Part shown: in pieces, positions 14,824-44,201 of the stretch | Numbering within the stretch: the first letter of the stretch is position 1 | Layout of the letters: every line of letters starts with the position of its first letter | Origin: Lepidodermella squamata | Lineage: Eukaryota; Animalia; Gastrotricha | Reading direction: 5' to 3' | DNA: 64,000 nucleotides | Assembly (NCBI GenBank): GCA_047495785.1 | Contig: JBLDXI010000029.1 | Span: forward strand, 1,364,001 to 1,428,000 | Position numbers and translations under genes: made by a program | The notes under the pieces: generated by a model | The model's database searches: none | What the model saw: the letters and a program-made list of their open reading frames with translations, nothing else | What the model was told of the DNA's origin: nothing

Positions 14824-15472
14824 ATGCCTCATCATCAATTTGTTCCGGCGGTTTTCATTGGCCTCAGCCTAATGATGATGAATGCGTACTCGAAGGTTCT
14901 ACCCGAAGATTTGCTCAACGAAAGCCCGAGTTCAAGCCATCATCTGCTCGAAAGTGGCAAAGCTGAGGAGGATTCGGATAAGATCAAACTCGATCGAGCA
15001 GCCATCAAACTCGCTATTTCAACCATGAGCCAGAGTGAACGTGACAAAATCATCGACGTCCTTACTGATAAGGATAAAATACCATATCTGAGTAAGTCCG
15101 TAATTTAAAATTAAAATTTCATTTTGAAATTTGAAATTTGAAATGTTAGAATTAAAAAATTATAAAAATATTTTTGAAATTATTGAAATTTATATTTTTT
15201 TAAAAAATTGAAATTTATTTTAATAATTTTTTTAAAATTTTTCAGAAGCTTTGATCAAGGCTTTGAAACGAGGCAGCATAAAATCGTCGAATAAGCTTGC
15301 TCGAGCTGTTATGCAGCAAATGATGGCGGCTTACAACAAGCGAATGGCCCGCTGTCTGGCCGCCTTCAGCAACTCAAAACAGGTGTGCTCGCTACAAGCG
15401 TCCTTCTACATTTGGGCTCAAGAGGTTGCTGGTGATATTTTAAACGGCGATATTACCAAAGTGATCCACTGA
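14824..15472 (+). CDS. Secreted C-x9-C/FYxWA peptide family, member P1
   Basis: Signal peptide MPHHQFVPAVFIGLSLMMMNAYS; phase-1 intron; core KRMARCLAAFSNSKQVCSLQASFYIWAQEVAGDIL (C-x10-C variant). Confidence 0.85.
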
Positions 15473-17086
15473 TTCATCATCACCATTGGCTGCGCATCAA
15501 TTTTCTTCTTCAGCTACATTTTTTCACCACAACATAATGATAATGATAATTTGTTAGTGATCAGCTTTCAGCCAAACACTTCTTATTGCATGTTCTTCGA
15601 TTTTTCTTTTTTTGCTAATAAAACTTGGAATTTGTCCGATTGATAAAGGATCAATTTTTGATAATAATTATGTCCGCTCAGAATTTTCGGGAGCTAGCTA
15701 TAACAATGCTATGATTTGGAGTTAATGAGGCGTGGTTGATTTCGATTTGCGATCCAGTTATGCTTTATGAATTTTTAACAGGGACGCTAAAATGTTTAGG
15801 TTTCGCCAAAATTGATCAGGGATATGGGGCGTAATTTAATTATCTCCCTTGAAAATGCAATGTTCAATGTTGATAATTTGATCACCTACTTATATTTCAT
15901 GCCAGGTCATGATGTCCATAAAATATGCGATAATTTATTGCACATCTCACTGATTTCACGAGTCTGAGAAATAACCAGAATTAATTTCTGAGTAGTAGGA
16001 ATTATAATGTCACAGTCTGCATGGCAAATCAGAACGCTATTAAGACACCTGTCGAACCGCGACAGACAGCCACACCCCGGCGTTTTTTATTGTTCACGTA
16101 CTTGCTCTATAAGAAAGAAGGACTCATCAGTCATTTGTTCAATTTCACAAAAATTAATGAAGAAAATTGGGTGACAAAATGAATAGATAAACGCTAAATT
16201 ATTTTATTTTTACGTCCACCTAATGGACTGTTGAAATTGAATCGATGGAACAACAATAGCCGATTACCCTTGCGTTATCAGGAGGAAATCATAGCTCGAG
16301 TACAAAAACGTGCAAGGACTAAAATGAAACGGGATAAAATTGAATTTCGCTTAATAAAATTCTTAAAAAAATTGAATTTTAAAAATTTCCGCTCGAATAT
16401 ACGGCATCAAACAAGCAATAACCATTTATTAGACTGATAGTTAGTTGAGCAATTATTCCAACCCGGCCACAACTGAAAAATAGATTGGGCGTTCCTCATC
16501 CTCGTCTCAACGAGAGGCATAGTTCAATATCAAATTTAAACCGAAATTTGTAAAATTCAATTTTATGCGAAATTTTCAGTGAATAGCTGGATACTATAGC
16601 ACTTTTAATTTGTCCAACGCGCTTAGTTTCAAAATTTTCCTTTTCGTGGTACATCCCTATCTTTCTCTCTATCTGTCATTCCTCCCTATTTTTGGCAGAG
16701 ATTTGCGCTATTTTCCTCTGAGTTGAAAACCTTCTAACAAAATATTTTTAGTCAATTCGTAAAATCAGACAAATTCGTCATAACCTGATCATCAATTACG
16801 GCATGGAAAGTTTATGAACACATGAAACGGGTCTTCAGCTGAAATAACACCTTTCTTATAGGACATGCACGTACACCACTGACATTTGACGTATGCATCA
16901 CCAAAACTCTTGAATCAATGTCCGCTTTTTCTTTCGTAAATATGTAATTATCCAAAAATATCTTGAACTCGTTCTCTATTATTTATCGAAAGACGAACTA
17001 AACTTCTTTCAAGCCACGTGGCTGTCATTTGATAAATCATCATCAGTCTTTTGCTATTTTTATAGCGTGAAAATGTTGGCAATAAG

Positions 17087-17934
17087 TCAAAGAGCCTGCT
17101 GAACCGCGTGATGCAGTAGGCGGAAGAATTTATCCCAGGCCAGTCGCACGTCGTTGTAATTGAAGCTGAAATTAGACTGCGCCCCGCCGCCCACGGTTGC
17201 CTCGATCAGGTGCTGGAAAATGTCCAGTGACTGCAAGATATCCTGCGACGTCACGCCGTAACTTGCATGCCGCTTAACCAGGGCCCCGACGTGCTTCTTA
17301 AAAGCCTTCTGCCGGTTAACCCGCTCAAGGCACTTGTCCAACGCGTACAAAATCATTATTCCCTGCCCCTAAGCAAGAAAAAATCGAATTACAATAAGAA
17401 GGGGCGGAGTCGAATTGTTTTTACCATCAACTCCCAAGATTCGCCGTATTTGATAGGGCGATTTGGTGATTTTTTGAAGTTTTGCTTAACATGCGGCATC
17501 TCGTCGAACATTCGCTTCAAGCCTTCATGGCCAATTGTCTCCGCGTTCCGCTTGATGACTTCACACGTGAGCCGCAGCAACTTGTAGTCTTCCTTTGTCA
17601 AATCGTTCTCGTTCGAAAATCGGCGCCTGATCACATCGAAAATTTCGATGCGATCGTTATTTCGCTCTTCTTCAATATCGGCATCAATGCAAAAGCTGCT
17701 GTTGCAGTACGACGCTGAGTCGACTGAAAGACGAAGGTGCTTATCGCTTCCAGATATCGAATTGGAGATTGTTAGGTCTTCTAGGCCGCTGTTTGCCCGC
17801 CGGGGCATGCGCTCGGTTGAAGGAATTTCAGTGAACTTGCGGCACTCTGATGGCGTGCCGTTGCAGCCAATGTCATCCAAACTTTTGCGATGACTACGGC
17901 GTCGATGTTGAGCGCCAGACTGCACAAGGCCCAT
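17087..17934 (-). CDS. Globin with long N-terminal extension and myristoylation motif, copy 1; exons 17934-17425, 17368-17087
   Basis: MGLVQS start; globin fold LTKEDYKLLRLT..IGHEGLKRMFDEMPHVKQNF(CD1)..ELM|GQGI..LVKRH(F8)ASYGV..AWDKFF. Confidence 0.85.
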
Positions 17935-17985
17935 GATTGTCAGAAAAGGAGGTGAAAGGTCAGATTTTGCCGGTAAAAAAGCCGG

Positions 17986-17992
17986 TTTTATA
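17986..17992 (-). promoter_or_regulatory. TATA box of globin copy 1
   Basis: TATAAAA on the minus strand ~52 nt upstream of the ATG; the same GGTATAAAA occurs upstream of the paralog. Confidence 0.5.
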
Positions 17993-18360
17993 CCTTGTGA
18001 ATCCTTTCGTGAAATGAGCGATTTTCAGAGTTCGTTTCTTGCCTAATCTTGTCTGGTAAAACTTAATCCCACTCGCATTAGCCGGTTTCTCATTTCCGAC
18101 GACTATAAAGGGTCAGAAGCCGCTGTAAAGTCCGCATTGAGGATAACGATGGTTTCCCACGTAAGTCGCAAAATTCTAAATTTTCTACTGTCGGGTTTCC
18201 TAAACTGATGACGAAGGTAAGAATCCGCATCTGGATTGTCTCGATGACCCTAACCCTGACCTTTATAATTTTCAACATTTAAACTCGAATACCACATGTT
18301 TACCTTATCAATTTATTTCGCTAAAGAGGCATATCCATTTGAGGAGGATGAGAATAACTA

Positions 18361-19356
18361 TCAAATTTCAACAGACTTGTTTTGAGTGAAGTAAAGTTTG
18401 TGTATGCTTCCACCGTTGTTAAATTCTACAAAACTGCGTGTCCGATTCATTGTCTGGTCGGATAAATTGCTCGACAGCTCGTCATGCCGGCGCTTCATCG
18501 ACTGCTTATGCGCCCACTGTTGCACTTCATGGTGCATGCTGGCGAAGAATTTGTTCAACGCATAGCAAACATCCGTGTACTCGGTGCACGTTGTCTTCTC
18601 GAAGGCGTAGGACGCGATTATTGAATGAAAAATATCCAGAGCCATAGCGATTTCATCTGGCGGAACGCCGTACTGCTCGTGCGATTTCAGAAGGGTGGCC
18701 ATGTGTTTTCGAAATTTTCGAGCCTTAGACGTGGCTTTCATGGCCTTTTCCAGGGAGCATAGAAGGATAATGCCCTGCCCCATCAACTCCCAAGCCTCGC
18801 CGTTTTTGATGGGCCTGTTCGGAGACTGGACATAGCGAAGTTTGATTTGCGGCATTTTCTTAAACATCCTAGGAAAAATCTCAAAAATTCCCAGAATATT
18901 GCTGAAAAAAGTAACTTACGTTTCAACCCCCTTCCAGGCAACGAATTCACCACTTTGCTTAACCCCTTCGAAAACTATAGCCAGGGTCTTTTGCTCCTCT
19001 CGGGTCGGCAAAAGCTCTTCGATGCTGTTACACTGAGTTGCCGGGTCGTAAGACAAATTCTCGACGGAGGTAAACGCTGAATCTGAGCAATCATCCATCA
19101 GCCCTGATTGATTCGGCGATTGGATGAAGTAGCCTTCTTCTCGCCGTGGAATCGGTCTCTTCGCAACAGACTTTGGCGATAACGTTGCTACCAGGGACCT
19201 CTGTTTCTTCGCTAGACTTTCGCCGCTTGCTTTCACGGAACGATGGGGCAGAAGGTCTGTTTTAGGGTGCTCATCCTTACCTGAGACTTTCCGCTCCACA
19301 TCAACTGGTAAGTCAGTCCGTTTACGAAATGAACTATGGCTATGTGAATGACCCAT
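18361..19356 (-). CDS. Globin with long N-terminal extension and myristoylation motif, copy 2; exons 19356-18920, 18868-18361
   Basis: MGHSHS start; VAWKGVET|MFKKMPQIKLRY..SPNRPIK.GE.WELMGQGI..LLKSH(F8)EQYGV; intron at globin position B12.2. Confidence 0.85.
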
Positions 19357-19390
19357 AATTAGTGATAAAATTACGATAGTTTATCCGAGC

Positions 19391-19397
19391 TTTTATA
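19391..19397 (-). promoter_or_regulatory. TATA box of globin copy 2
   Basis: GGTATAAAAG on the minus strand ~35 nt upstream of the ATG. Confidence 0.5.
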
Positions 19398-19890
19398 CCC
19401 CAGGATTTGGCAAGATTTCAACGCTTTTTTGCACAAGTTTCTTATGACGAACTTCAGGGATTATACGGATATGCATTTGTAGGGCTTTCTGACACAGTGA
19501 TATGACCAGTTATAGAAAGCCACTCCCGATCCAGACAAGCGCGTGTCGCCCTGCTAGAAGAAGCCATTTTTTACCTCGTTATTCAAGACAAAAGGTAATA
19601 GAGGCGTTCGGAATTGAGTGAATAGCGCGCTGTCACAATGGCTCACGGCGTCAACAATATACAGGATCGCGTTAATAGTATCACCCTGCGGAATGAATGG
19701 AGAGCGCGCTTAAATATTTACCAAGCGCTTTCTCATGAAAGTGAGACGGACAGAGAGATGTGCGGGAGATGGAAAAAGCTGCCTGAAATAACAGCTGCTT
19801 TTTCATCACAATACGTTTTTCATCACTCTCAGGGCACCTGCTGAGGTTTTGAATAATTATAAAACATTTATTTTCATCTCGTTATAAATA

Positions 19891-20187
19891 ATGCATTCAG
19901 CCTCATCGAGTCACTTCGAGATGCAGATCAATAAGCAATCGCATGCGCCGAACTACTCCAAGTTGTCTCAGCATGACCGCGGACGGGACAACAGCCGGTT
20001 GCAGATTGCGCAGAGCACGGCGACAATCGCGCAGATGGAGGAGCATAAAGCGGTTCCGGATCATCAGTCTAGGATAAATCGTTACCATTTAGCGATCATT
20101 TTCGCGCTGATTTCACTTGCTTTTGTCGCTGGCTGGGTTATGCTGCTTGTTGCTTATTTCATGCGATGGGGCATTTTTGACCAATAA
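19891..20187 (+). CDS. Small single-pass (C-terminally anchored) membrane protein, unknown function
   Basis: 98-aa ORF with hydrophilic N-terminus and one long hydrophobic segment LAIIFALISLAFVAGWVMLLVAYF; AATAAA follows the stop. Confidence 0.55.
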   Translation: MHSASSSHFEMQINKQSHAPNYSKLSQHDRGRDNSRLQIAQSTATIAQMEEHKAVPDHQSRINRYHLAIIFALISLAFVAGWVMLLVAYFMRWGIFDQ

Positions 20188-20639
20188 ACACCAATAAAAT
20201 ACGAGTCAAAGTAATTACCAATGTTTCATTTTGAAGTTCAGTATTTGACATTTTCAAGTTTTTTCTTTCACCGAAGAGAACTGCGTAGAGAACGAATGAA
20301 GGATTAAGATTTCAGTCACGTGGCCCTACCTGATGCCACACCTGGGCGATAATCTTAGCCGAAGTTGCTGGGAAGCCATCTTCAGAGAAATTGCTTGTCA
20401 ATTTGATGAGATTTGCCGAGCTGCTGTGCCTTTCAAAGGAAAAAGTAAAAGACCAATACAAATTCATGTCCAAAGTCTGCGGATGCTGACTCAAGACTCA
20501 TCTTGAAGTCACTGATAACCGTTTGGGGAAGAGGATGCTAGGAAAATAGCCATCTTTGGTGTGATGTGGTTAAGAGTTCCTAAAGTTATGAGCTGGACTC
20601 AACTTATAGAGAAATAGTTTTTATTTACACTATCGAATA

Positions 20640-21972
20640 TCACAGCGTTATGGTTATATTCTCGAACACGACAGAATTAAGCGGGTAGTCAATATTCAAC
20701 TTATTGTTATGGTGAATTGGCGATGTGATCGAAGCAAAGACTGCGGCTCCTACAGACGCAGAGCAGCATAACCGCCGTAGGCAAATCTCATTCACATGAT
20801 AGTGCTGCTTCAATGACTTTCCCTCATCGCCATTTATCACCGACAAAAATCCGGGCTTCATGATCTTCCAACTCTTAAACATCGACCCAGTACAGGCAAC
20901 GTCGAGTTTACCCTTATTTTTGGTCATGAAGTCTGACAGGGCTGGCCGGCCGTGTAGTCTCTCCATTCTCTTAACCACTCCGACTACCATACTCGCAAGA
21001 TGACGCCCACTTTCGTGAAAAAGGTGTTTAGCCAACGCGTCGTCATTCGCCGCTAGCTCTGATATATTAATAGCTAAACGGGCTATTGTCGACTTGCTGA
21101 ATTTAGGCCCGAAAATCTCGAAAAGTTCTGAGAGATTCGTTATCAAAAGCCGATGAGCTATCGCCTCCCTTGTGGCATGACGATCGAAACTTGAGCAGTC
21201 TATGCTACAAGCCCCGCTGTGTCTAACGAAGCATTCCTCAGATTCAATAACGTGTCGAACCGCCTCTAACGCAATCCAATAAGCCGACCCGAAATCGCCC
21301 AGAGTTGCGCCCCAACCTCCGCAGGTTACAACGTTCAAGCTTCGGTTTGATGGCGATGGAGCGAGGAGTAGGCAGTTTGACCCTGTGCCAGATATGAGTA
21401 TGACTCCTCCGATTTGCGGATGAAAAACAGTTAAGGCGGTTGACAGAGTATCGTTGCAAACGATTATGTGGCATCGGTTGTGGTAAGATGGCCGATTGAA
21501 AGCTGTGTACAAAGCGTCGCGAAGGTTTTTCTGAGTCTCCTGTGTTTCGCAACCTGATATTCCCAGACCCTGAAATATAGGCATAGATGAATCATAGTCC
21601 GAGGCTAATTACTTTATTGTTACTATGGCTATGGTTCGATCGAAAAAATCGTTCCGGTGAATATTGAGCTTCTCAGCGGCTGACATGAGCATTGCGTCAA
21701 TGTTGCGGGCTGAGACATCAGGACCAAGAAACTAGGAATGGAATTCGGATGAAAGATGAAAGCTGAGTGGCTTCAAACCTTACGTAGGGTGAGACTGTTG
21801 CTGCCACTTCAACGTCACATAGATGAACTCCCTCAGAGTTCATAACGACCAATTTTGTTGAAGAAGCTCCTCTAAAAAAGGCAAAGTTAGCATCGATAAA
21901 TCCTAGGAATAGGGGTTGAACTAACCCTTCAACGCCAACGTACAGCTTTTCATGAGTTTCATGAGTTTCCAT
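20640..21972 (-). CDS. NAGK: N-acetylglucosamine kinase-like (BadF/BadG/BcrA/BcrD family), multi-exon
   Basis: LYVGVEG|GASSTK phosphate-1 motif, GLGISG, VCNDT, GVILISGTGSNC, CGGWGATLGDFGSAYWIA, CTGSMFKSW; short GT-AG introns in the 5' part. Confidence 0.92.
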
Positions 21973-22154
21973 GATAATTAAAGATTTCCTAGTACGGAAA
22001 ACGGAGAAATAAACCACTGGGGAATTTGAGTTAAAGTGATCTGGAATCACAGCGAGAAATATCACTCGAAAAATCACAGGGATAAAGGGCTGTCCATTGT
22101 CCATAAATTAACTGAGTAATCACTAAGGTAGTCTTATGAAGAAACGTCTCTTCT

Positions 22155-24259
22155 TCATTTCTTCGTTCTAAGGATTTGTTCGACAACATCGCAAAGTCTC
22201 TCCCGGCCTCTGACTCGTTGAAAAGCTTCGGCCGGGGAGCATCCAGTCAAAGCCAAAACCACAGCACAAGGAACAATTTGCTGCATTTCAGCCGATTCTT
22301 GGATCAGTTGCTCGTCCGGTATGCTGATATCAGCTGCGTCAATGCTTGGCGACTGTTTAATAGCCGCGATGATGCAGCGCCTAGCTTTTGCCAGATCGCA
22401 ACCAGTGACATCAGCAACACTTCGAATTGCGCGCCAAAGTAGCTTCGTATTGCTTGTTTTAACATCAATCATAATATTTTTGTAGATTTTGCCCAGCTGG
22501 CAGTACGTGACGGTGGACGTGATTTGAAGAATGAGCTTAGCCAGAGCTTGCAAATAAAACACACCAAGTCGATCGAAATCGTACAGCCCCTCGAGCTCGA
22601 ATTTCACTATTTTAGACGCATCGCATTGCGTGGTCAATTGCACCGAGTTGCCTACAATTTTAATCTGGAAATGAGCGTCTTTTCCTAGATCAGCCAATCG
22701 TTTTGGATCGAAAAGTGCGTTTGAAGTCTTGAAGGCATTGTTAAAGGTATTTTTCGCCATGATTCCTTCGGCGTTCCGAACAAAGTAGTGCCCATTCCAG
22801 TCGACAGATTGATCCAGAGCTTCTGAGTGGATCATCGGCACCACCTCGCCATGAGCTGCGTTGAAAGTTGGTTCCGCCTCGGAGCAGTCAAAAGCCGCTA
22901 AGATCCCGAGTTCTTTCTCAGCTTCAATCAAAAGGCTTCCGCCTTTCCGCATTTTTTCGGCCAGAAATTTTAGAAAATCAGCGAAGTCACCACCAGTCAA
23001 GCTTGGAAGTTCCAGGATCTTCGTAAAAGATTTAAGCATCTCAGCAATGTCAACGCTAGAAATGAAGTTAAAGAGTATTTGTCTAAGGTAAGCGAGGAGA
23101 CTCACTCTTTGTGCCTTTCTGAGCCAAGTTTGGCATTTAAAGAGCAAAATAATAAGTCCAGAATTACAACAGTTGCCAGGCCACCTTTCATTCTTGAGCT
23201 GCCAGATAGAGCCTCCGGCTAAAAATTGAATTGTACATAAAAGCGAACAGTTATAGGCCGAGATTTTACCATAATAACTGGGGTAATTAGGAATTGGCCA
23301 TTTCTTTCCATCTCAAGAGCAATATCACGAAAAGTGCGGTCAAAATTCTTGATCGGTGCATTCCTATAATGTAAACTATGAGTAGTCATAATCTCAGGAA
23401 TTTGCAAGGCCTACCTTGCTAAATGAGGCGGATTAAAACCAATAGCAACTGGTAGATATGTACTAGGATTTTTTAGCGCGTAATCCAGCTGTCCAGCAAC
23501 ATATGGCGCCCATAGACCAACCGAAATTCCGATGTATAAAACTCGGTCGTAGCCGGCAGAAACTCGCCCCAGTGTAGCCCTACCCTCAACCGCATCGTCT
23601 TCAACTAGCTCGATAGAACTGAATAGAGCTCTGAAATAAGATTTTTTACGTGCAAAGTTCCCATAATGCAGTTATTAGGCTTACTTATCGTCACCTGCGC
23701 AAGAATATAGTACTTCCACCTTGGTTTTCGCATCAGAGAAATGCAGCACCTGGTTGAGCTGTTAAAAAAGCAAGATGTCTAGCTTGCTATTAGACCACTT
23801 GAAAGCATCATTATTACCGCTGTTAGAAAGCAGATGCGTCCAGACGTGCCGCAGCCGCCGAGGATAATTGCCGGTTTCTCGCCAGACTGGAACAACAAAA
23901 AGAGCGCTGCTACAAATCAAATAAACAAAATAAAACCAGAATTTACCTTCAAAAACTCAGCAGCTTTTTCAGTAAACTCTTCAAATTTGCCCACGAAATG
24001 TGGTAGTGAGTAAGACTGCACAGGTATATGAAAACACAACGCGTTAAGCTTAACTTTATTGCATATTATACCAACATACTGGGCGTAGATTTTCAGTGAA
24101 AATCTGTTTGTGGCAGTCCAAAACGATTTTCAGCATTTCTACACAAGAAACATATTTAAATTGCTAATAAGAAATGCTAAGCTTACCCTCGACAGAGGAG
24201 TTGCTCAAATTGGCAGAGAGCCAATTTTTTCGCTCAGTGTAAGGCAAAATGTCACCCAT
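22155..24259 (-). CDS. GCKR: Glucokinase regulatory protein-like (SIS-domain, MurQ-related), multi-exon
   Basis: Exons read LPYTERKNWLSANL, ILGGCGTSGRICFL, AGDD..ELVEDDAVEG, YIGISVGLWAPYVAGQLDY, IGFNP, EALSGSSRMKGGLAT and LGKIYKNIMIDVKTSNTKLLWRA, matching GKRP motifs in order. Confidence 0.88.
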
Positions 24260-24541
24260 TTTTTACTGACTCGAAACTTCTAGTGTCAATTTACTATTCA
24301 CGCTCGAGTAACTCCCAAGGGACTGCGATGTAGACTAGATTACAGCTGTCACTGGGTTTCTTATCCCATTTCTAATCAATTTTTCATTTCTTTGTTTACG
24401 CTTATGTGGCTTATCTCTGCGGAAAGAACAGTTTTCATTATTCATGATAAAAGTCCGCAAGCCACCATATTTTATTCGTAAAAACATGCGATACGATTTT
24501 CGTGAAAACAACGGGTTTCAGGGATATGGTATAACTAGATA

Positions 24542-24933
24542 TCAATTCCCGGTCATGATTTCCTTGGCTAGCATTTGAGCCCATACGTAGAAGCTGATCT
24601 CATTCTCGCAGACTTGCCGCGATCCAAGGGTCTGCATGCACTTCTTGAGCCGCTCTGCTTGAACGAGTTCATCGCGCACCAGGCGAATGAGGTCCTTCAG
24701 ATCACCCCTCTTCTCCAAGAGTTTCGTCATGACTACCGCTGAAGGAAAAAAGATATGACAAAAAACCCAATGCATTTGGAACAATTACCTTTGACTAGAG
24801 CCAGTTTCTTCTGCATTATCATAGCCCTTTTGATATCGGGCGATACAGTTGTTGAGCTGACTAGATTGGAAACTAGTAAATTCATTACAGCTAAACTCGC
24901 CATGACGAGCTGATAGGAAGTTGCAATCTTCAT
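24542..24933 (-). CDS. Secreted C-x9-C/FYxWA peptide family, member P2
   Basis: Signal peptide MKIATSYQLVMASLAVMNLLVSNLVSS; phase-1 intron; ERLKKCMQTLGSRQVCENEISFYVWAQMLAKEIM. Confidence 0.88.
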
Positions 24934-27900: not shown

Positions 27901-27943
27901 ACTCCTCGTGGAACTGACTGCTGTATCCATCAAGTAACAAGGA

Positions 27944-29377: not shown

Positions 29378-29774
29378 ATGGATTTTCGAGTGATTACTAG
29401 TTGGACATTCATTGTCCTCTTGTCTAATTTTTCGATGCTAGCGCATTCCATACTACCTGTTGGTCCAAGTGAGCGAAAAGCTGTCTTATAGGCCTTTCTA
29501 ATGTTGCCGTGTATTTAGAGCAAATTCGAGATGCCATGATGCGGAATGACCCAGAACAGATGCGAAATTTAGCGAGGCAGCTTCACAAGGCAGAATACGA
29601 CCGACGATTCAATGCTTGTCTGAATGTCTTCAGATCTCACGTGATATGTTCACAACAGGCTGCTTTCTTCGTATGGTGAGTCTTTGAGTTGGCGTTGATC
29701 TTGTTCACCAGTTTACCTATTTCAGGGCCCGCCTATTAGCTCGAAAAGTCATGGAAACACGCGACGATAACTGA
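29378..29774 (+). CDS. Secreted C-x9-C/FYxWA peptide family, member P3 (3 exons, not in ORF track)
   Basis: MDFRVITSWTFIVLLSNFSMLAHS signal; phase-1 intron; EYDRRFNACLNVFRSHVICSQQAAFFVW|ARLLARKVM, with a second intron splitting the Trp codon. Confidence 0.85.
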
Positions 29775-31335: not shown

Positions 31336-31410
31336 GACAAGACTGTGCGTATTCAATTATTCTGAACACATACAATCATTAGCGGCTAATTGAATACACA
31401 CAGACCTGTC
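31336..31410. repeat. Short imperfect hairpin (~75 nt)
   Basis: GACAAGACTGTGCGTATTCAATTA pairs with TAATTGAATACACACAGACCTGTC (24-bp arms, 3 mismatches). Confidence 0.6.
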
Positions 31411-33170: not shown

Positions 33171-33549
33171 CTAATTTTGCTGCACACCGCCTTGCATTAT
33201 TTCCTTTGCTAACATTTGCGCCCAAATGTAGAAGCCAATGTTGCCCTGGCAGATGGCTTTCGATCCGAGCGCTTGGATACACTTCTCCATTCGCTTGTGG
33301 TAGATAAGCTGCTCCCGCACGTCTCTCACCATGTCGTCAAAATCCTTGTAATCGCCCTTAATCAAAGCTTGGCGGAGGAAATCTTCTAAAGCCACTATTA
33401 AGATAGCTGCAGTATTGAATAAGGGAAGACCTACCTCTAGCCATGTCCTTTTGCTCTTGAGTCGCTAATATTGGGCTGCAAGTTATGTATCGGCATGTTA
33501 ACAAGGTGAGCAAGCCAAGAATTACTAGAGTTTCTCGAGTCGAGATCAT
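33171..33549 (-). CDS. Secreted C-x9-C/FYxWA peptide family, member P5
   Basis: Signal peptide MISTRETLVILGLLTLLTCRYITCS; phase-1 intron; KRMEKCIQALGSKAICQGNIGFYIWAQMLAKEIM. Confidence 0.88.
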
Positions 33550-34282
33550 TTATTCCTAAACAAAACAGTGAATGAATTTAGATTTGTCAAAAATGTGTAT
33601 TACGAGCTGTATGCGATATCATTAGTCAAATATGCTCCAGGCAAGTTTGATTCAATGGCCATCGTGTCGTTTTCGTAATCAATGGCTGCAGGATAAATGA
33701 CGATGATTCAACTATCGGATGTAACTTTTCGCATGTCGTGATCCACAATAACCACGCATTCACCTTTTCGTTAGCCAAATTTGAGGTTTTTCTGTCTATC
33801 AAGAATATCCTGTTGCTTCCTCACCTCGCCACTCAGTCACGTATCGAATATTTCGTGGTTGAATTTCTGAAAACGTAACGTCCTCTTCCGGAAATTCTGG
33901 CTGTCTGACGCGGCCCAACGAAGACGTATTCACTGAGGCGGGATGAGTCACTTCTATTTGTCTGTATAGATCGATCATTTTCGGCGCGCATAAAGTGTGC
34001 GATATTTTAGTAATAAAGCGCGCACCTATAATCCCAATCTTAGGATCAAGCGCGCGCTTTAGGATTAAACTTTTCTCGATAATAATTCAATTTAGGCCAT
34101 ATTATTTTCGTCGCCCCGATGCCGCCTGAGATTCATTGCCGCGCGCCGAGATTGATACGGCGCGAATCTGGAACGGTCAGTCATCACCAGACAGTAAAGT
34201 GACGCAAATCTGCATCTCGACCCACCGCGATGACTGATACCACGCGATCGTAGGTGCCGAGATGAAGCACCGCCATTTAGAA

Positions 34283-34290
34283 TATAAATA
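34283..34290 (+). promoter_or_regulatory. TATA box upstream of P6
   Basis: TATAAATA ~90 nt upstream of ATG 34377. Confidence 0.45.
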
Positions 34291-34376
34291 ACGAGGCACC
34301 GTAGCGTTTGATTATTCCAATTTTCTTGCTCTTCTCAATTTTTCACGCCTACTTCTTCTTCGCGATTTTATTCAAT

Positions 34377-34833
34377 ATGAAATTCAACGCTTCCTCAGCT
34401 CTGTGTTACGTGATTGTTGGATCGCTTCTGATTTCATGCATTTTCGCCCTTCCTATGCGGCGGTCGGAAGCTGGCAAGGACGACAATGATCGACGCCTTC
34501 GTAAGTTGCCCGACATTCTTGAGTGCGTTGACCTACTTGTGCATTTTTAGGCCTTCAAATTCTTGATATGATACGCAAGAACGATTTCGCTGGAATCGAG
34601 TCGCTTGCGAAGAAAGTTCGCGACGATAGACAAAAAGCGAAAATGGATAAATGCATGAGCATGTTCCAGTCCTACGCCATCTGCACGCAGGTGAGTCATT
34701 ACTCTGATTAATCTATGTTCGGTTCTACGAAAATAAATTTATTTAGACGACCTCGTTCTACCTGTGGGCGCAAATGCTCGCCCGTGACATCATGAACAAC
34801 GAGAAAAACGCCCCAGCAGCACCTGCGCAGTAG
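34377..34833 (+). CDS. Secreted C-x9-C/FYxWA peptide family, member P6 (3 exons)
   Basis: MKFNASSALCYVIVGSLLISCIFA signal; phase-1 intron; KAKMDKCMSMFQSYAICTQ|TTSFYLWAQMLARDIM, with an extra phase-0 intron. Confidence 0.87.
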
Positions 34834-35007
34834 ATGTTTACACGGAAAAAGCGCTTAAATGTTCAGTTTTAGCTATGATCCTATACATTATTAATGTTCA
34901 AAACTCAATGTCAGAAAATTAGGCGGCAATAAATTTAAAGTTTCACCTTCATCGTCACACTCTAATTGTTTATTCGAAACGCATCAACTAAAAATAACCG
35001 AAACACT

Positions 35008-35503
35008 TTAGTCCTTGGCTGCGTTGAGTGGCGAGTTGTCGTTCATAATATCTTTCGCAACCATTTGCGCCCAAAGATAGAAAGAAGACTGTCCGCGGCA
35101 GATTGAGATCGATTGAAACATCTTCATGCACTTTTCCAGTTTAGCTTTCTCTTGATCCTGCCGAATTTTCCGGGCCAGTTGTTCAACCGCAGCAAAATCC
35201 CGTCGCTTGATCATCTCAGCAATTTTCGCCTCTGTCAGTGGGAATTATTTAAATTTGATTAATTAGGCTAGACGCTAACTCACTTAGCTCAGAGGCTCGA
35301 GGGAGCTTGATAGGTTCCGGTTGCTTGACAATGACCGGCTGAGGTTCCATGTCAGTGACAAACTGTTGAGTACGATCGTCATCGGTCAAAAACGCCGTGT
35401 TCAAGTCGTCGTCCGAGATGCGGGCGATAACAATTGGCGTGGCGTAAATTCGCTCACAGATCAATAGAGCGAAAGAAACGGCGATGAGAAACAACGCCTG
35501 CAT
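35008..35503 (-). CDS. Secreted C-x9-C/FYxWA peptide family, member P7
   Basis: MQALFLIAVSFALLICERIYA signal; phase-1 intron; KAKLEKCMKMFQSISICRGQSSFYLWAQMVAKDIM. Confidence 0.88.
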
Positions 35504-36878
35504 TGCTTCTTGCCTTTTTCAGTAATTAAAGTTGAATAAATTAAAAATTTACTATAAATTAAGAAAATTCAACCAGCTTTTATATTGCCGATACTAAGGC
35601 GTGGGGAAAAAGTAACGTAAACCATGATAGTATTTACACTTAAGTCGATGTTGCAAATGAATCCCTACACTGTAATTGTCGCCTTATAAAACTATCGCCA
35701 TGAGTCAGTTTTCAGTTCCGACCAGCAAAATGCAGCGTGAAGGAGTAAAGAAGACCCCCGCCATGCAATATCCTCATGTATTAGGACTAGTATCCGGATT
35801 AATACAATAAGGTTCGGTTCATACGCGTGGCCGGATTCGTGTCAAATGAGCCTCTTCATGATTTTGGATAGCATTATGCTACATAATTTTCACGCTTTGC
35901 TCCCGTGAGTGACCTTAGAATTAGTCTACTCAGCGCCTGTCTCATTATAGTCCTGCGTTGGCTTGTACTAATAGGTATAGTCGATTTGATCCAATAACGA
36001 CCCGACTACTCCTGTTAACGTAGGAGGATTACCATTGGATAATCACGATGCTGAGACAGTTATTAGAGCATGATATTTGAATTTAACTAATGCCCCGACC
36101 ACCGACAAGTATCAGTTCGAAGAGGCGATTGCCTATTGACGTCATAGAGACTTATGCGGGAATTGAGATATTGGGACAGCGGGACAAGTGTACCCTGTAT
36201 ATCTTTTCGGCTATTGGTTGAGGCTTGCAGTACCAATATTTTAATAGAAGTTGTAGCTGAAAACTGCCAGGAAGATCCGTTCCAAAGTTTATGAATTTAT
36301 TAATTCCAGCAACTTTATTGTCCTCTGTGAATTTAGAATTTTGATACAGCTATCAAGCTCGGGAGAATAAGGATTATTGAATAAAGTTGAAAAAATGGGT
36401 AAATCAAAGATCGAAGTAGGACAGCAGACTCGATAGGATAAGGAAAATCGACATACGGGTCTTTGACTTCGTTCAACTTGCAGACCGATAGAGAGGTTCC
36501 CTACGACTCCCAGCGGTCCTCCGCTGTCCGCTTTGTGGATAAATGAATCATCTTTTTTCCAATTCCTCTACTTGTTATGGATACAGTACGCAGGTCAGAA
36601 ATAGGGATAATGTTCAAAGTGCATTTGGATCCAACAGCCTCAAGTCATTTCGAGTCGTTAGTAACCCCTTTACACTATACAGCATCAATACTTCATTTCA
36701 ATTTTTCGAAAGTCAAAGCCCTGAAATAGCGAATAAACCTTTTTTATTTGCAATAATAAACAAATGTTTACATAACATGACAAGTGCGATTTTGTAACTC
36801 GGACACAGTGCAGCGAGAATTGCAAATCATCAAGACCATGCTGCGTTGAAGTTGCTAGTAATGAGCGGTCGCCTGCGA

Positions 36879-37289
36879 TCATTGCTCCGCAGCAGGGGCA
36901 CCATTACCGCCGTCCATTATCTGCTTTGCGGCCATGCGCGCCCACACGTAGAAACCTGTCGAATCGGTGCAGATCGGCAGCGACTTGAAAACAGCCATGC
37001 ACTTGGCTAGCCGCTCTCGTTGTTGCCGCTCCGCCATTTTGCCCATCAATTTTTCCAGTACGCTCTCGTAGTCTTTCCGCTGCAACAACTGGAGGATATT
37101 TGTCGCTGATTTCTCGTTAGGAGAGCCGTTGTTAACCGCAGCGATATCAGCTAATAGCTGAGCATCATCTGAACTTCTTCGGCCCCTAGCAGGTAGCGCT
37201 GTAGTGACATCAAGAACGAAAAGAGCTACAGCCAGAGTTGCGAAAAACGCCAGCTTAATACTAGATTTCGCGATAAGAATATTCGCCAT
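36879..37289 (-). CDS. Secreted C-x9-C/FYxWA peptide family, member P8 (no intron in CDS)
   Basis: 136-aa ORF: signal peptide, RGRR site, ERLAKCMAVFKSLPICTDSTGFYVWARMAAKQIM. Confidence 0.92.
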   Translation of the reverse strand: MANILIAKSSIKLAFFATLAVALFVLDVTTALPARGRRSSDDAQLLADIAAVNNGSPNEKSATNILQLLQRKDYESVLEKLMGKMAERQQRERLAKCMAVFKSLPICTDSTGFYVWARMAAKQIMDGGNGAPAAEQ

Positions 37290-38240
37290 TTAATGTCTTT
37301 CGCTAAAATATGAAGAAATTATCCTAATAGAAATGACAAAAGTGTGACCTGCCCATCGCAAATTCACGGTTCATATACTTGTTAGCGTGGTTTGTTTGGT
37401 TGCCGGCCATCCATCCCACACTCGCGTGACGCTTGAGGAAGTGCGCCCCAGTTGCACATTATGTGCCTGGCCAATTTGACATAAATTGTTCCGCCGCTTC
37501 ATTTATCGATAAACAGCCCATATTCTGGGCGTCGTAGTGCTCAGGTCACTTTGTTTTCGAGTTATAAAAATTTCACACGGCCTATAGCTTTATTTCGATT
37601 TCCTGTACCCGCACGAGTCCATCGAATGATTCATAGAAATGAATAATCGTATATGCTCAAGTACGGGGGTTTAATTATGGTCTAGCCCTCAGATGATGGA
37701 AACCGCCGGCAATGTTAGCGCAAATCGATCGAGATTTGAAGAGGGCTAAGCATATTGCCATATTCTCGTTGTGAGCTCTTTGAGCTGCGATTTTAGTTAA
37801 CAGCGTCAAGATTTCTTGCTTGTCAGGGTGTTGACCGGCGTTATAGATAATGCCATCTGAAAGTCAGCTGATGTGGATCATAAAGATTAATTTGAGAGAT
37901 CTAACCAATCTTCGAGCTCAAAGGCTTCGCGCTGGCTGCGACGAGAGGAAGTAGTGCCATTTCGAAAAAAAGCAAAACGTTAAGTAAAGTAAGGGCCATT
38001 TTAAACTTTTTTATTCGTAAATCTGCGAAAGGGAAACACAGCATTATAATGCTCGTCATTCAGATTTCTATGACGAAGTGAGAGAACCACACCCATTTCC
38101 TCAACGGATGCGAGGCTATAATAATCGCCCTAGAAATGTCCACTTCCCACACAAAAATAAAATCAATTTGAGAAAAAACGGCACTGAAAATATCACAAAT
38201 GCACATATCCATTTGAATTGAAGTTATATTGGTAGGAAAG

Positions 38241-38760
38241 TCAACTCATGATCTGTTTGGCAACTTGGCGTGCCCATAAGTAGAAGCTACCCGAATCTGT
38301 GCAGATTTGCATCGAGTTGAAGTATTCCATGCATTTAGCCAGCTTATCTCGCTGTTTCCTATCCTTGAGTACTTTAGCGAGGGCCAGAATGAACTCCTGC
38401 TTCTTCGAGGGGTCAGAAAATTGCTCATAAGCTGACCCTAAGCGAGACATCTTCATTCTAACTCTTCAAGTTTACATTCAACTTACGGAGAGCAGATAAT
38501 TGGGCTAGTTTTGGGCTAACTGGCGTCTCCATCCTGCTAGAAATCGGGCCAGTTCGCAACTTAAGGCTTAGTTTCGGCTCATCTTTCATAGACTTAACCA
38601 AATCATCGAAAAGCGTGATTGAAATCGATGGTTCGCCGTCATCTTCAACTTGCCGTTTGATCCTGTCTCGGCCAGTTTTGTCAAATACCGGATGGCTATT
38701 GCAGTTATCCAGAAAAGTCTGAGCCAAGATAAGAAAAGAGGCGATGGAATAAATCAGCAT
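38241..38760 (-). CDS. Secreted C-x9-C/FYxWA peptide family, member P9
   Basis: MLIYSIASFLILAQTFLDNCNS signal, RIKR furin-type site, 49-nt phase-1 intron; DKLAKCMEYFNSMQICTDSGSFYLWARQVAKQIM. Confidence 0.87.
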
Positions 38761-39225
38761 TTTCAAAGCTGACAGTAAATAATGGCAGAATATTATGTGA
38801 ACTGATGCGCTGATCCACTGAGTGACCACTGAATTGTCCATATGCAATAAATTATTCCGCGTATAAGCACCTGCTGTGATGTTGTCAGACGATAAATTGC
38901 TGGAAGTAAGCAAAATAGGCCAGTCCTAGAATTTCGATTGACTTCAAACTCTCGATGTCATAGTTTCGATTTCTCGCTTTGTGAACGCATAGCTATAAAG
39001 TTGAGGACTAATTTAGTTCCCGAACATTTATTGTAGCAGGATTTCTTACGGGTGGGGAGTTTTTGGGAGACGCCTAAGACGTTCATCGTCGATAATAAGA
39101 CGATAACGTTTTGTTAAGCTTTACTTTTCATTATCCGAAATTTCAACATGATACTAAAATTGCTTCGCCGTTAAATTCATTGCCCACAATTCAAAACATG
39201 GTACATATATTTATCGCATGAATAT

Positions 39226-39693
39226 CTAATCAGATACATGTTTATCATCTTCCATGATATTTTTCGCCGCCATTCTGGCCCATACATAGAAACCGGTATT
39301 GTTCGTGCAGACTGGTAAAGAGTTGAAAATAGCCATACAGCGTTTCAGACGGTCGTTATACTGCTTCTCAGCTTGTTTCTTCAGTAACAAGCTCAACAAC
39401 ACCCCCTTATCGTTCGAAGATCCGCCAAGCATTGCCAGAACACCCTCTGAAAGTCAGTCTTCATTAATGCTGGATGATTTTTCGGACAAATTAAACTTAC
39501 TGATATTTTCCACTTTCCTTTCAGATAAAATTGTTGTTACCGGGGCCACTGTTGTAGCTTTTGCTAAGGTTTTGCCAGATTGGGGTTTAGATTTTTGTCG
39601 ATTTGGCTTGACAGTAGCGTCTCGAGCCGCGGCGGCTAAATTTGCTATTACGAAGATCAGCAGCAGCAGCAGTGAAAATTGAGTGGAAGTCAT
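39226..39693 (-). CDS. Secreted C-x9-C/FYxWA peptide family, member P10
   Basis: MTSTQFSLLLLLIFVIANLAAA signal; phase-1 intron; DRLKRCMAIFNSLPVCTNNTGFYVWARMAAKNIM. Confidence 0.88.
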
Positions 39694-40410
39694 TTTATGT
39701 TATTAGCGACCTGAACAATGAAAATTATATGGTACTTTGCGACGAGAGAGAGAAATGTGCGTGTCGTGTGCTTTTCGTGATAATACAAAGATTGAAACGT
39801 ATGAGTCGTGCACTAGTAACGCCAGGGGTGATTGAAATTTGAGATTTGAAAGAAATGAGGCGAGTTGGCACCAATATTAGCGAAAATTCATTCAATTTGG
39901 ACAATCGCATGTTGTGCGTGAATTTCGAGTCATGGAGCTGACGTGGCCCCGGAGTGTTGGTTCCAGATTTCACTCTTTGTTAATGTAATTTTTTATAATC
40001 AAATAAGTCCTGCGAGGACGCAGGCTGTGCCGGCCGGAGCATGATAGAAACAGTTCTAGTATATAAGGAAGTGACATCGCCTACGCTGCTTAGAGTGACG
40101 CAGAAGGCGAGAATAGCTAATTGAAAGACTATTTTAGCCTGGCTTCTTCAATATTTACTTATATGGCTCTTCACTTAGGACGCGTAAAACTTGAGAAAAA
40201 TTGCTGCCCTCTTGAGCGTCAGAATAATTTACTATTTTATTAAATAACAATAAACATTTAATCAATTTCAAGAGCTAAATCGTAACAAACAAATTTCAAA
40301 GCCATTCGAAATGGTCCGCATTGTATCACGCTGCTTTGAAGTGGTTTCACCGATGAAGTATTCAAGTGGCTACTAGAAATAAATAGATCGCTATAATGGC
40401 ACAACGAGTC

Positions 40411-40787
40411 TCAGTGGCCATGCATGATTTCTTTCGCCGCTAGCCGAGCCCACAGGTAGAACCCGAAGTTGTTGTCCGTGCAAATTGCCGGCGATTGGAA
40501 AAGTTCGATACATCTCGCTAGCCGCTCTGTGTAGCCCTTTGCAACTCGATCCGTCAGGAGTTTTTCTATCCGTTCGCGGTCATCGCCACCTTTGTTAAGC
40601 ATTTCCATCACACGCCCTGAAAGAGTTCGATTTTAAGAAAGGAAAATCAATGAATGAGTTACTTACTTGCTATTTGAGCTTTTCGTTCATTGTCCATCCG
40701 TTGAAGAGGGTCCCGTTTCATCGGGAGCGATGAAGAACCGACAACAAGCAGTAAAATCGTTAAAGAAACTAACATGGCTGAATTCAT
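40411..40787 (-). CDS. Secreted C-x9-C/FYxWA peptide family, member P11
   Basis: MNSAMLVSLTILLLVVGSSS signal, KR site, phase-1 intron; ERLARCIELFQSPAICTDNNFGFYLWARLAAKEIM. Confidence 0.88.
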
Positions 40788-41386
40788 GGTTCTTTGCAAA
40801 TGACCAGATTTGAAGGGAGCAGATTTTTATCTTTGAAAAAATATTTCTGAAATACCTACATGTAAAAAACGTATATGTCAGAATCAACAAGGTCGATCGC
40901 TCATGCGAAGCTTCCCAACACCCACGTCACGGATATATAATAACATCCGGCAGGTAATCGTCCACTTGAACCCTGATGAGGCACATTATTTAGCAGACGC
41001 AAAAGTGACGGACGACGGTTATTAGCGAAAAATTAGCCGGCTCGTCTAAATTTGTGCGCATAACTTGCGTACATTTTAATCTATCTAATAGCTGACAGGA
41101 ATTTCATTGAAAATGCAAAAAGCCCTTGAACATGTCAATCCATAGACGGGCCGTCATACGGCCCCTAAGGGACGAGTACAAGAAGTCTTTGATCAAGCTA
41201 TACAAAATATCGTCATCACGAATCACGTGTATGCGCAGGGAGGACTTTCGACTTGTTGAACTTCCGGTAAAACGACAGTCTGTTCAAACAACAACAAGGC
41301 TATCCTACGCAATGTTTTTCGTTTATTTTGTACAAAATAATTGCAATAAACATTGAATAAATTAACAGCTAATCGATGCTGGCTGA

Positions 41387-41787
41387 TTATCGCCGCATTT
41401 TACGAACCAGCATTTGAGCCCATATGTAGAAAGCTGCTCGCCTCGTGCAAATTGCATAGGAAGGAAATATTTTCAAGCATCGATTGATTCTCTCCAGATC
41501 GCTAATACGTTTCAAGCGCTTCAAAATCGCGACAACTCGATTGATTTTGTTCCGCTCAATCAACCTTATTAAGAGGCAGCCTGTTAAACCAGAATATTCT
41601 GCTAGAATTTTAAGTAATAGCCAAATGAAAAATGCATACGCAGTCTATTCGAGAGTTTCGTCTCTGGTTCTGGGTCACTTTGAGCTAAAGGAACAATTGC
41701 CACGCCCGGGGATGGTGAATTGTTGTCGTGGCCGTAGCAGAGAGGTGCAGTACATGCTAGTAGGATCAGAACAATCGAAAGATGCAT
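41387..41787 (-). CDS. Secreted C-x9-C/FYxWA peptide family, member P12 (highly cationic)
   Basis: MHLSIVLILLACTAPLCYG signal; phase-1 intron; ERINRCLKIFPSYAICTRRAAFYIWAQMLVRKMRR*; exon 2 is not in the ORF track. Confidence 0.85.
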
Positions 41788-41817
41788 TTTTGCGTCGGAT
41801 ATGTGAAGTATCGGACG

Positions 41818-41825
41818 TATTTATA
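41818..41825 (-). promoter_or_regulatory. TATA box upstream of P12
   Basis: TATAAATA on the minus strand ~31 nt upstream of ATG 41787. Confidence 0.4.
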
Positions 41826-42214
41826 GTCCTCTCAATTTCTATTTTTTTGTGTTATGAATGAAATATGGCTTCTACGGCACCACGCTCACCTTGGACTTCT
41901 GCTGCCAAAAGCAATCTCGAGGACATATAACAGATTAAGAGGTTAAACCGATCCCTCGGCTATATCGACCCGACATGTGAGTTCTAGTATCTAGATATCA
42001 ATTATTCCCCGACAAAATCGCGCACTCGGCGTCGAAACGAGAATAATCCTACTTTTTTCCTATTATTCATCAAATGCCTAGACGTTCCACGCCGTTATTA
42101 CAGATTATGAGTCGCTTCTTTGGGATATTTTTAATACTTCAGTACATTTTATTATAAGTTATTTCCAGGTATTCCAGGATTATTACGACAGGAGTAATTT
42201 AATAATATGAATTC

Positions 42215-42757
42215 CTAGGGCTGTTTCATGATTTGTTTCGCAGCAACGCGAGCCCAGACGTAGAAGGCGGCTGAGTCTTGACAGACAGCCATTGATCCAA
42301 AAACCTGTAGACATTGCGCTAGTTTTTCGCGGTACTCGTGGTCCTTCTTGCGTTGCAGGATATCGCGAAGTGTCTCCTCTATTCCGCCGTTTGATTTAGC
42401 ATTTTCCATCAAGCTGACAAGCGTTTCTGAAATAGAGATGGTTTGAACATTTAATTTGTTGCAACAGACAACTATCTCAGATTTCTATATAAAGATTTCT
42501 ATTCATGCCGTGCTAGAATTCAAGGATAAATCAAATTAGGTGAAATTAGTGAACTAGTGGACAAAAATGACATTAGCTATTTTCACATTTGTCCTTGGAT
42601 ACTGTTGAGAAAATGTGGACACGGACTTACGGATTGTTTGAACCCGCCGGGCTGTTTCGCTGCTAGAATCATTCGCCGTTACTACATCGGAGTATGTGAT
42701 TAGGTATGTCGCTAAAACAGCGAGAAGTAGCGAATATCTGCTGAATATGTGAACCAT
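42215..42757 (-). CDS. Secreted C-x9-C/FYxWA peptide family, member P13
   Basis: MVHIFSRYSLLLAVLATYLITYSDVVTA signal; phase-1 intron; EKLAQCLQVFGSMAVCQDSAAFYVWARVAAKQIM. Confidence 0.88.
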
Positions 42758-43802
42758 TTTCGATTGAAAAGTGTGATAAATCTGATAACTCTGTCCGAAT
42801 TCAAGACGGCATCGAGTATTACAATGCAAATAAACAATAAAATTGACCTAATTTGAACATAAAATAATAACTCAATAATGAATTTGAACTTGGAATTTAG
42901 TAAAATCTCATTTTTTATTGCGCGTAAAAACATGCAATTTTATTAGTGCCACTCGACCCTTGCCTACGCTGTCTAGTAAATTAACTATCTAGGATTCAAG
43001 AAGGGGCTCATCAGTGGCGGTACATTTGGAGTAGTCTCAACGACCTAATGGAGAAAATCAAATTCAAATCATCACAAAGAAATCACACTTACGCGCCTCA
43101 TCTCATCGTACGGCAATCGTGGTTGCGCTGTCTCAAAGTGGTGATTTCGTTCTACATCGAAATTCTCGCACAACGTCGTATTGTTATTTAATCGATAAAG
43201 GATGTCACTTTTCTCATCAGACTAATGTCAAATGTTATATTAGACAAATATCTTCTTTGTAAATATTTGGCAACCCAAAATAAATGGATTGAGACATCAG
43301 GCCATTTTGTAACTAAAACCCCCTCTTCTATCGAATTTTGGCAGCTGAGGAAAAGCTGAGGAAAGCTAAGAAGACGCTCTGTAACCAAAGATCTTAACAT
43401 ACGCAGAAGTCGACGTAGTATCAGCAAATTGCTATTATATTCTTCAGATAGGAAAACTGAAGAAATCATGTCGTAATCATTATTGTTTAAGTATCTGGAG
43501 TTTGGAGCCGATGACTCGAGACTCGATTGTAATTGAAAATGTGCAAAGGCGTGGCATTATTTTCTACAACTCGGATATGTTGTATGTTGCTAGAATTTTC
43601 TAGCGTGAAACTCATGGTGATAGCCTACCGCCTACTCTGTTTAAATAGCAAAGAACTTGCTAGATTTTTAATTTATTGTAAATACTGATTTCAGCTGTTG
43701 ATTAGAAAAATGTAAAAATAAATCCAAACACTTGACTACGGCAATTTCTTTCACGCACAATGAACACACTATGATGCACCGACTGGTCATTTGTTTGCCA
43801 TG

Positions 43803-44201
43803 TCATCCAGCACTCGGCGACATTATTTGATTTCGTACCATTTTCGCCCACAGGTAGAACCCGGTGTTGCGGGTGTTGGTGCAAAATGATTTCATATTGA
43901 AAATAGCCATGCATTGCGCGAGGCGTTCGCGGTACTCGTGCTCGGCCCTCTTCCTTGCTAGAAGGCTTTTCAGCTTCTGCTCATTTCCCGACTCCAGCAA
44001 ATCAATCAAAAAATCTGAAAGAAACAGAAGCAACAAATAATTTTGTTTACAGTATAAGCTTTAAGTATAAACTTTACTTAGGTGCTTTACTTTATCGGCT
44101 CGCGCCAAGTCAGAATCTAGATGAAGTATTGACGCCTCGATTTGCTGAGAGAAAATTACACCGATACCAATACATAGAGAAGTCAAGAAAACCGCCCACA
44201 T
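43803..44201 (-). CDS. Secreted C-x9-C/FYxWA peptide family, member P14
   Basis: MWAVFLTSLCIGIGVIFSQQIEA signal; phase-1 intron; ERLAQCMAIFNMKSFCTNTRNTGFYLWAKMVRNQIM. Confidence 0.87.

Follow-up and report, generated by a model that had tools for sequence, protein, structure and literature searches.

Clustered insulin-like genes of invertebrates, such as the ins genes of Caenorhabditis elegans, encode small proteins with a signal peptide and a helical, disulfide-stabilized product, and their paralogues are divergent ligands. The Turandot-type stress proteins of Drosophila, secreted and mostly helical proteins of ~11 to 15 kDa whose biochemical role was long unknown, are also encoded by clustered genes. 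We analyzed a 64,000-nucleotide stretch of genomic DNA from the gastrotrich Lepidodermella squamata (contig JBLDXI010000029.1, positions 1,364,001 to 1,428,000 of the forward strand; here called the window) and found an array of 15 related loci, 14 of them intact genes encoding small proteins with a signal-like N terminus and a conserved C-terminal domain that carries a pair of cysteines and an F[YF]xWA motif. The family has no name, no Pfam entry and no solved structure.

The likeness to the insulin-like clusters is one of analogy, with no homology claimed: both are local clusters of many small, divergent genes for secreted helical proteins. Members of the insulin/relaxin family, however, have at least six cysteines in a fixed B-chain and A-chain pattern and match the Pfam Insulin entry, whereas the window family has only a single pair of cysteines, has its helices in another order and gives no Pfam match. 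The Turandot-type genes are analogous in the same way, being clustered and encoding small secreted helical products, but no member of the window family matches Pfam Turandot, and neither its Cys pattern nor its motifs are related to theirs. The C-x9-C spacing, with its association with helices, recalls the twin Cx9C (CHCH) proteins of the mitochondrial intermembrane space. Those proteins carry two motifs, which form two disulfides, on two antiparallel helices, lack an endoplasmic reticulum signal and are imported into mitochondria, whereas the window family has a single pair with its second cysteine (Cys2) in a loop, gives no CHCH match in Pfam and has a signal-like N terminus in every copy. 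Finally, luqin/RYamide-type precursors contain an amidated RF, RW or RY peptide with a Gly-dibasic site right after the signal peptide, together with a C-terminal pair of cysteines ~10 residues apart. Compared by description only, they share with the window family a secreted precursor and a near-C-terminal Cys pair of similar spacing (nine intervening residues in the window), but none of the 15 first exons in the window encodes an amidated RF, RW or RY peptide motif. To our knowledge, luqin precursors do not have a helical F[YF]xWA segment.

The window is eukaryotic DNA of ~41% G+C with short GT..AG introns and tightly spaced genes. A six-frame scan for a Cys...Cys...aromatic-x-W pattern found the core motif at 15 loci, with no further occurrence in the 64 kb. 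One is at 14.8 to 15.5 kb, the other 14 between 24.5 and 44.2 kb. A profile hidden Markov model built from the window copies and run over all six frames of the window recovered the same 15 loci, with E values of 1e-13 to 1e-28 per locus and L9 weaker at 28 bits, and the rest was noise. An earlier note on this DNA had counted 14 intact genes, 13 of them packed together and one an outlier at 14.8 kb. Our models confirm all 14, each of which forms a single open frame of 98 to 164 amino acids once its exons are joined across GT..AG introns. The layout likewise stands for the intact genes, but a degenerate 15th copy, L9, lies among them at 37.7 to 38.1 kb and had gone uncounted. An origin by local duplication, which the note had also proposed, is supported. 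Rfam and tRNA scans of the window and of related loci gave no match, and nothing virus-like was found in the window.

For each locus, we enumerated ATG-started hydrophobic first exons together with GT..AG introns across which the frame runs open into the core exon. Exons were joined only to test the frame. Searches used the exons of spliced genes one at a time, with the product of the single-exon gene L8 as the full-length query. The intact genes each encode a hydrophobic signal-like N terminus, a variable linker and the conserved C-terminal domain, and the secreted-type products described earlier are supported by the N termini of the 14 intact models, as judged by a hydrophobicity rule. An intron lies 33 to 37 codons before the first cysteine (Cys1) in 13 of the 14 intact genes and in L9; L8 is intronless. 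This first intron is in phase 1 in every case and is therefore one ancestral intron, which divides a signal-plus-linker exon from a domain exon. Most such introns are ~50 nt long, with GTAAGT or GTGAGT donors and (T)nCAG or TAG acceptors, and the splice sites of L13 score lower than those of the other copies. Second introns are found inside the Trp codon in L3 and L4 and just after Cys2 in L6, which brings the intact genes to 16 predicted introns. L9, which we left as found with no read-through of its disruption, keeps the signal-like exon, the long helix and the C-x9-C pair. It is without the third-helix F[YF]xWA motif, and its frame closes early (one disruption).

Pyrimidine-rich acceptor-like sites (...TTTAG or ...TTCAG) lie upstream of the ATG in L1, L2, L5, L8, L9, L11, L12 and L15, at 0 to 20 nt in most of these copies and at ~55 nt in L12. 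Such sites suggest spliced-leader trans-splicing, or else introns in the 5' untranslated region, in this organism.

The earlier note had described the family by a ~33-amino-acid core forming a helical hairpin, with C-x9-C spacing, invariant Cys, Phe and Trp-Ala residues and a terminal "...IM." Parts of this description stand. In an alignment of the window cores, both cysteines are indeed invariant, and they are separated by nine residues in 13 intact copies but by ten in L1. A Ser, the Phe and the Trp are at least 90% conserved rather than invariant, and the terminal IM is not universal among the copies. The pattern of R/K at position −4, C-x8-10-C, five to seven residues and aromatic-aromatic-x-W was found in 14 of the 15 window loci. 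The conserved unit at the C terminus is about twice as long as had been thought, ~65 to 70 amino acids, and in place of a hairpin AlphaFold2 predicts a longer domain of three helices. In the model of full-length L8, made from an 82-sequence alignment, residues 71 to 130 form a block with predicted local distance difference test (pLDDT) values of 87 to 96; the domain modeled alone had a mean pLDDT of 81 and a predicted template modeling score of 0.59. The predicted order is a short helix 1, a long helix 2 running to Cys1, a short turn and loop containing Cys2, and a helix 3 made by F[YF]xWA...IM. Helix 2 is basic and terminates in R-hydrophobic-x-[KR]-C, after which a loop of 8 to 10 residues leads to Cys2. 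The hydrophobic face of helix 3 (F, aromatic, W, A, M) is conserved. The net charge of the domain lies between 0 and +7 in 13 of the 14 intact copies and is +14 in L13.

We then compared the family with known proteins and folds. Pfam-A gave no match in 10 window copies and no recurrent family in 82 members scanned singly. Searches of PDB sequences with one protein and two profiles returned chance matches or designed helical bundles only, and the best Foldseek hits of the full-length and domain models against the PDB had E values of 3.4 and 7.9. A word-indexed homologue search with L8 alone found no match, and the same kind of search with a 26-sequence profile found 8 unnamed metagenome proteins only. 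Exact look-up of two window proteins showed that they were not on record, a literature search with six-residue motif strings found nothing relevant, and a scan of JGI metagenomes yielded a single weak locus. The lack of any match to a known family, as first noticed by inspection, holds in Pfam, in PDB sequences and in PDB folds compared by Foldseek, and no named protein turned up in the clusters checked.

Profile searching, which the earlier note had proposed, recovered the 15 window loci and did find relatives elsewhere. An exhaustive profile search of the 1.84 billion cluster representatives of a 15-billion-protein collection returned 76 matches with E values of <1e-3, 19 of them <1e-10. Four of the 76 were excluded because they are long, match the profile only in several separate parts and lack the family motif; two of these (P0050 and P0072) proved repetitive on reading. 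This leaves ~72 true relatives. These are proteins of ~70 to 250 amino acids (median, 114) with the domain at the C terminus and, usually, a hydrophobic N terminus, present in 71 of the 79 relatives that have >45 amino acids before Cys1. When cluster mates were included, the motif was present in 90 of 98 sequences. The cysteines of these 90 are separated by nine residues in 76, eight in 13 and ten in 1, and 71 have exactly two cysteines in the domain region. Arg or Lys precedes Cys1 at position −4 in 93% of relatives and at position −1 in 76%. All 30 clusters that we looked up consisted only of ENA metagenome or Logan sequencing-run assemblies, with no name or Pfam domain. The contigs that carry relatives are compact, intron-poor animal DNA with genes for Integrator subunit 1, uS5, V-ATPase A, G6PD, a neprilysin-like protein, a C-type lectin and a Cu-monooxygenase, and family members occur on them singly, as a pair (contig L009) or as a group of three (contig L001). 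The uS5 of one related contig gave slightly higher scores against vertebrate ribosomal proteins than against those of nematodes or flies, by a small margin.

Contig L001 (36% G+C) comes from another species and carries orthologues of L8, L7 and L6 together with a syntaxin-like gene, in the same order and relative orientation as in the window. L3 to L5 are absent from it between the L6 orthologue and the syntaxin-like gene. In the window, the syntaxin-like gene lies between L2 and L3 (28007 to 29114, plus strand) and encodes Syntaxin_2 and SNARE domains and a C-terminal membrane anchor; its orthologue adjoins the L6 orthologue on L001 and serves as an anchor of the conserved gene order. The L6 orthologue has retained the intron after Cys2. 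The L7 orthologue (L001 positions 1955 to 2200, plus strand) has an extra intron after its W-A-Q codons that the window L7 does not have, showing that intron positions in the domain vary between orthologues as well as between paralogues.

Nei-Gojobori counts of nonsynonymous and synonymous differences per site (pN and pS) between the window genes and the L001 orthologues of L6, L7 and L8 separated the two parts of the protein. The domain was 87% and 81% identical in the two exons of L6 (pN, 0.08 and 0.13), 77% identical in L8 (pN, 0.135) and 55% identical in L7 (pN, 0.28), with a pN of 0.16 when all domains were pooled. The signal and linker parts of L6 and L8 were 32 to 34% identical, with a pN of 0.47 to 0.49. 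Purifying selection clearly acts on the domain; the constraint on the pre-pro part is only weak.

The paralogous domains within the window are on average 31% identical (range, 13 to 55%). Since orthologues are more alike than paralogues, most of the duplications are older than the split from the L001 species. The closest pairs are neighbors: L3 and L4 (49%), which are on opposite strands and have an extra intron in common, and L6 and L7 (55%), also on opposite strands. L2 and L5 pair at 49%, and L8, L10, L11, L12, L14 and L15, all of them minus-strand genes from the 36.9 to 44.2 kb interval, form a looser group (33 to 52%). The difference at L3 to L5 reflects a later gain or loss.

Because each paralogue has been kept separately by purifying selection, we read the array as an old, locally duplicated family of small secreted pre-pro-proteins that would act as a set of extracellular ligands with different specificities, a reading that strikes us as coming close to an even chance. 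Our best guess at the kind of ligand is a hormone-, pheromone- or cytokine-like mini-protein. In such a system, the signal peptide would send the product into the secretory pathway, the fast-evolving linker would follow it, and the three-helix domain would be the functional part. One disulfide would tie helix 3, along with the loop, to the end of helix 2, and the mature domain would stay whole, with no cleavage inside it. The paralogues would then be maintained one by one as signals of distinct specificity. More tentatively, and as a possibility that we would hold with some reserve, this may be an animal family, undescribed until now, of secreted three-helix ligands that are stapled by a disulfide and have an insulin- or cytokine-like role. 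It would comprise at least 14 paralogues of ancient divergence, every one with a conserved orthologue of its own.

Several points weigh against the ligand reading. The evidence for it comes from DNA sequence and predicted structure. Signal peptides were called by a simple hydrophobicity rule. The two invariant cysteines most likely form one disulfide, as judged from their invariance and position. The conserved Arg at position −4 could instead be cut by a convertase, which would release a peptide of ~35 to 40 amino acids, and about a third of the members have an extra K/R at position −5 before it. Upstream of the 15 genes, 7- and 8-mers did not rise above background, and there is no common upstream motif. 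Lastly, with a pooled pS of ~0.9 over the domains, synonymous sites are saturated and no dN/dS ratio can be computed.

The competing explanation that survives best is that these are host-defense or venom peptides, that is, cationic amphipathic helical effectors directed at membranes or at targets in other organisms and diversified by tandem duplication. A tandem array of divergent paralogues encoding small, secreted, Cys-containing helical products would fit it, as would domains that are basic on balance (most of all in L13) and a copy number that varies between species, L3 to L5 being absent from L001. Venom and antimicrobial precursors, however, typically have a conserved pre-pro region and a variable mature part, and here the pattern is reversed, with a conserved domain (pN, 0.16) and a fast pre-pro part (pN, ~0.48). 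Several domains have a net charge of only 0 to +3, and no toxin or antimicrobial family was matched in Pfam or the PDB. Since the mature part is conserved, the pre-pro part variable and the net charge modest, we favor ligands over such effectors; the venom or defense role that the earlier note had kept among its options is disfavored, and we regard it as unlikely.

Alternatively, the products could be abundant secreted structural, carrier or protective proteins, such as those that build mucus, cuticle, the egg envelope or an extracellular house, or else small helical proteins that bind lipids or other ligands. The products are indeed small, helical and of secreted type and come from a multicopy array, the hydrophobic face of helix 3 could bind a partner or a lipid, and the region is rich in other secreted products, including ML-domain proteins and ferritins. 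Yet the paralogues are very divergent while each is conserved in its orthologue, which fits distinct specificities better than a bulk material, and the proteins are without repeats, low-complexity sequence or known matrix domains. We consider a structural or carrier role quite unlikely.

A third possibility is that the active products are short neuropeptides cut from the linker at KR or RR sites, with the Cys domain merely an associated carrier; neurophysin and the C-terminal part of luqin-type precursors are precedents for such a carrier. Dibasic sites do occur in most linkers, as had been noted before, and three copies begin with [AS]-L-P-x and then basic residues directly after the predicted signal peptide. 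The sites have no conserved position, however, and the one after the signal peptide in L6 is missing in its orthologue. The linkers of the paralogues have no motif in common and are only ~32 to 34% identical between orthologues, L3 and L4 have almost no linker, and there is no recurring Gly-basic amidation motif. It is doubtful, and we would be surprised, if the linker peptides were the active part. The notion that the motif is a chance pattern, or that the loci are noncoding remnants of one duplicated sequence, is already refuted: only the degenerate L9 would suit it, whereas 14 frames are open with canonical introns in a common phase, profile E values go down to 1e-28, relatives lie on many independent contigs and nonsynonymous change is strongly suppressed in the domain.

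If the reading as stapled three-helix ligands is right, it would imply an equally uncharacterized receptor system in an undersampled animal lineage with compact genomes, and the ligands would add a new class to the extracellular signals of a little-studied lineage. Should the products not be ligands, the array is still a clean case of an orphan family of secreted proteins whose gene order is conserved. Annotation routinely misses small spliced secreted genes. Given a profile, gene models, a fold predicted with confidence and purifying selection, this hitherto invisible gene set becomes an annotatable family that can be traced across animal genomes and looked at for its expression. The individual loci are listed in the table.

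Table. Loci of the array, in window coordinates; exons are given in the direction of transcription.
Locus	Product	Span	Exons	Strand	Remarks
L1	164 aa	14824..15472	14824-15091, 15246-15472	+	E 3e-22; sole C-x10-C copy
L2	113 aa	24542..24933	24933-24789, 24738-24542	-	E 9e-24
L3	98 aa	29378..29774	29378-29468, 29519-29675, 29726-29774	+	Second intron within the motif Trp codon
L4	107 aa	30617..31081	31081-30982, 30926-30770, 30683-30617	-	Trp-codon intron as in L3, its closest paralogue (49%)
L5	112 aa	33171..33549	33549-33435, 33394-33171	-	E 2e-24
L6	116 aa	34377..34833	34377-34500, 34551-34690, 34747-34833	+	Second intron in the loop after Cys2; orthologue on L001, with the intron
L7	147 aa	35008..35503	35503-35284, 35231-35008	-	E 1e-25; orthologue on L001
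L8	136 aa	36879..37289	Single exon	-	E 2e-27; full-length query and structure model; orthologue on L001
L9	Degenerate	37675..38059		-	28 bits, profile positions 2-41 only
L10	156 aa	38241..38760	38760-38487, 38437-38241	-	E 2e-25
L11	137 aa	39226..39693	39693-39501, 39446-39226	-	E 5e-28
L12	108 aa	40411..40787	40787-40667, 40616-40411	-	E 2e-24
L13	113 aa	41387..41787	41787-41640, 41580-41387	-	E 3e-22; most basic domain (net charge +14)
L14	112 aa	42215..42757	42757-42631, 42426-42215	-	E 2e-26; intron of 204 nt
L15	111 aa	43803..44201	44201-44078, 44014-43803	-	E 4e-25; loop after Cys2 longer by two residues

The window also contains two single-exon open reading frames with an ANF_receptor domain, at 53386 to 55701 (plus strand, 771 amino acids) and 61261 to 63525 (minus strand, 754 amino acids). 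The first, the only one of the pair searched against the PDB, had GABA-B receptor subunit 1 as its best match, with the ligand-binding and seven-transmembrane parts covered, and we read both as probable divergent class C G protein-coupled receptors. A link between the array and these two genes, which lie nearby at 53 to 64 kb, is unsupported; they are GABA-B-like and not natriuretic-type receptors.

On the other side of the array, two small secreted-type open reading frames at 6303 to 6668 (plus strand, 121 amino acids) and 7517 to 7795 (plus strand, 92 amino acids) are 33% identical over 76 amino acids (E value for the pair, 1e-6) and have no Pfam match. From this similarity, they may represent another unannotated small secreted family. 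Tandem ferritin genes lie at 4022 to 4477 and 5103 to 5693, both on the minus strand. The closest proteins to the second in the collection are unnamed and no more than 76% identical. The window ferritin is ~75% identical to mollusc, tick and coral ferritins alike and is uninformative as a taxon marker. Tandem genes for ML-domain lipid-recognition proteins (NPC2/Der p 2-like) follow at 9390 to 10203 and 11557 to 11865, both on the plus strand.

Between L1 and L2, two paralogous genes on the minus strand (17087 to 17934 and 18361 to 19356) have a weak globin-domain match (E value, 1e-4) and are otherwise silent in Pfam. Their products have long N-terminal extensions that start with Met-Gly, a possible site of myristoylation. 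The minus strand also carries, at 20640 to 23147, a glucokinase-regulator/MurQ-like gene (GKRP C-terminal lid domain) and, immediately downstream of it, an N-acetylglucosamine-kinase-like gene (BadF/BadG/BcrA/BcrD ATPase), and the pairing of a kinase with a MurQ-like protein is more typical of bacterial amino-sugar recycling. Beyond L15 are a lysyl-hydroxylase (PLOD)-like gene with glycosyltransferase and 2-oxoglutarate (2OG)-oxygenase parts (45167 to 47505, minus strand) and a second 2OG-Fe(II) oxygenase gene, which is prolyl-hydroxylase-like (50050 to 51538, plus strand). Both are markers of animal collagen processing.

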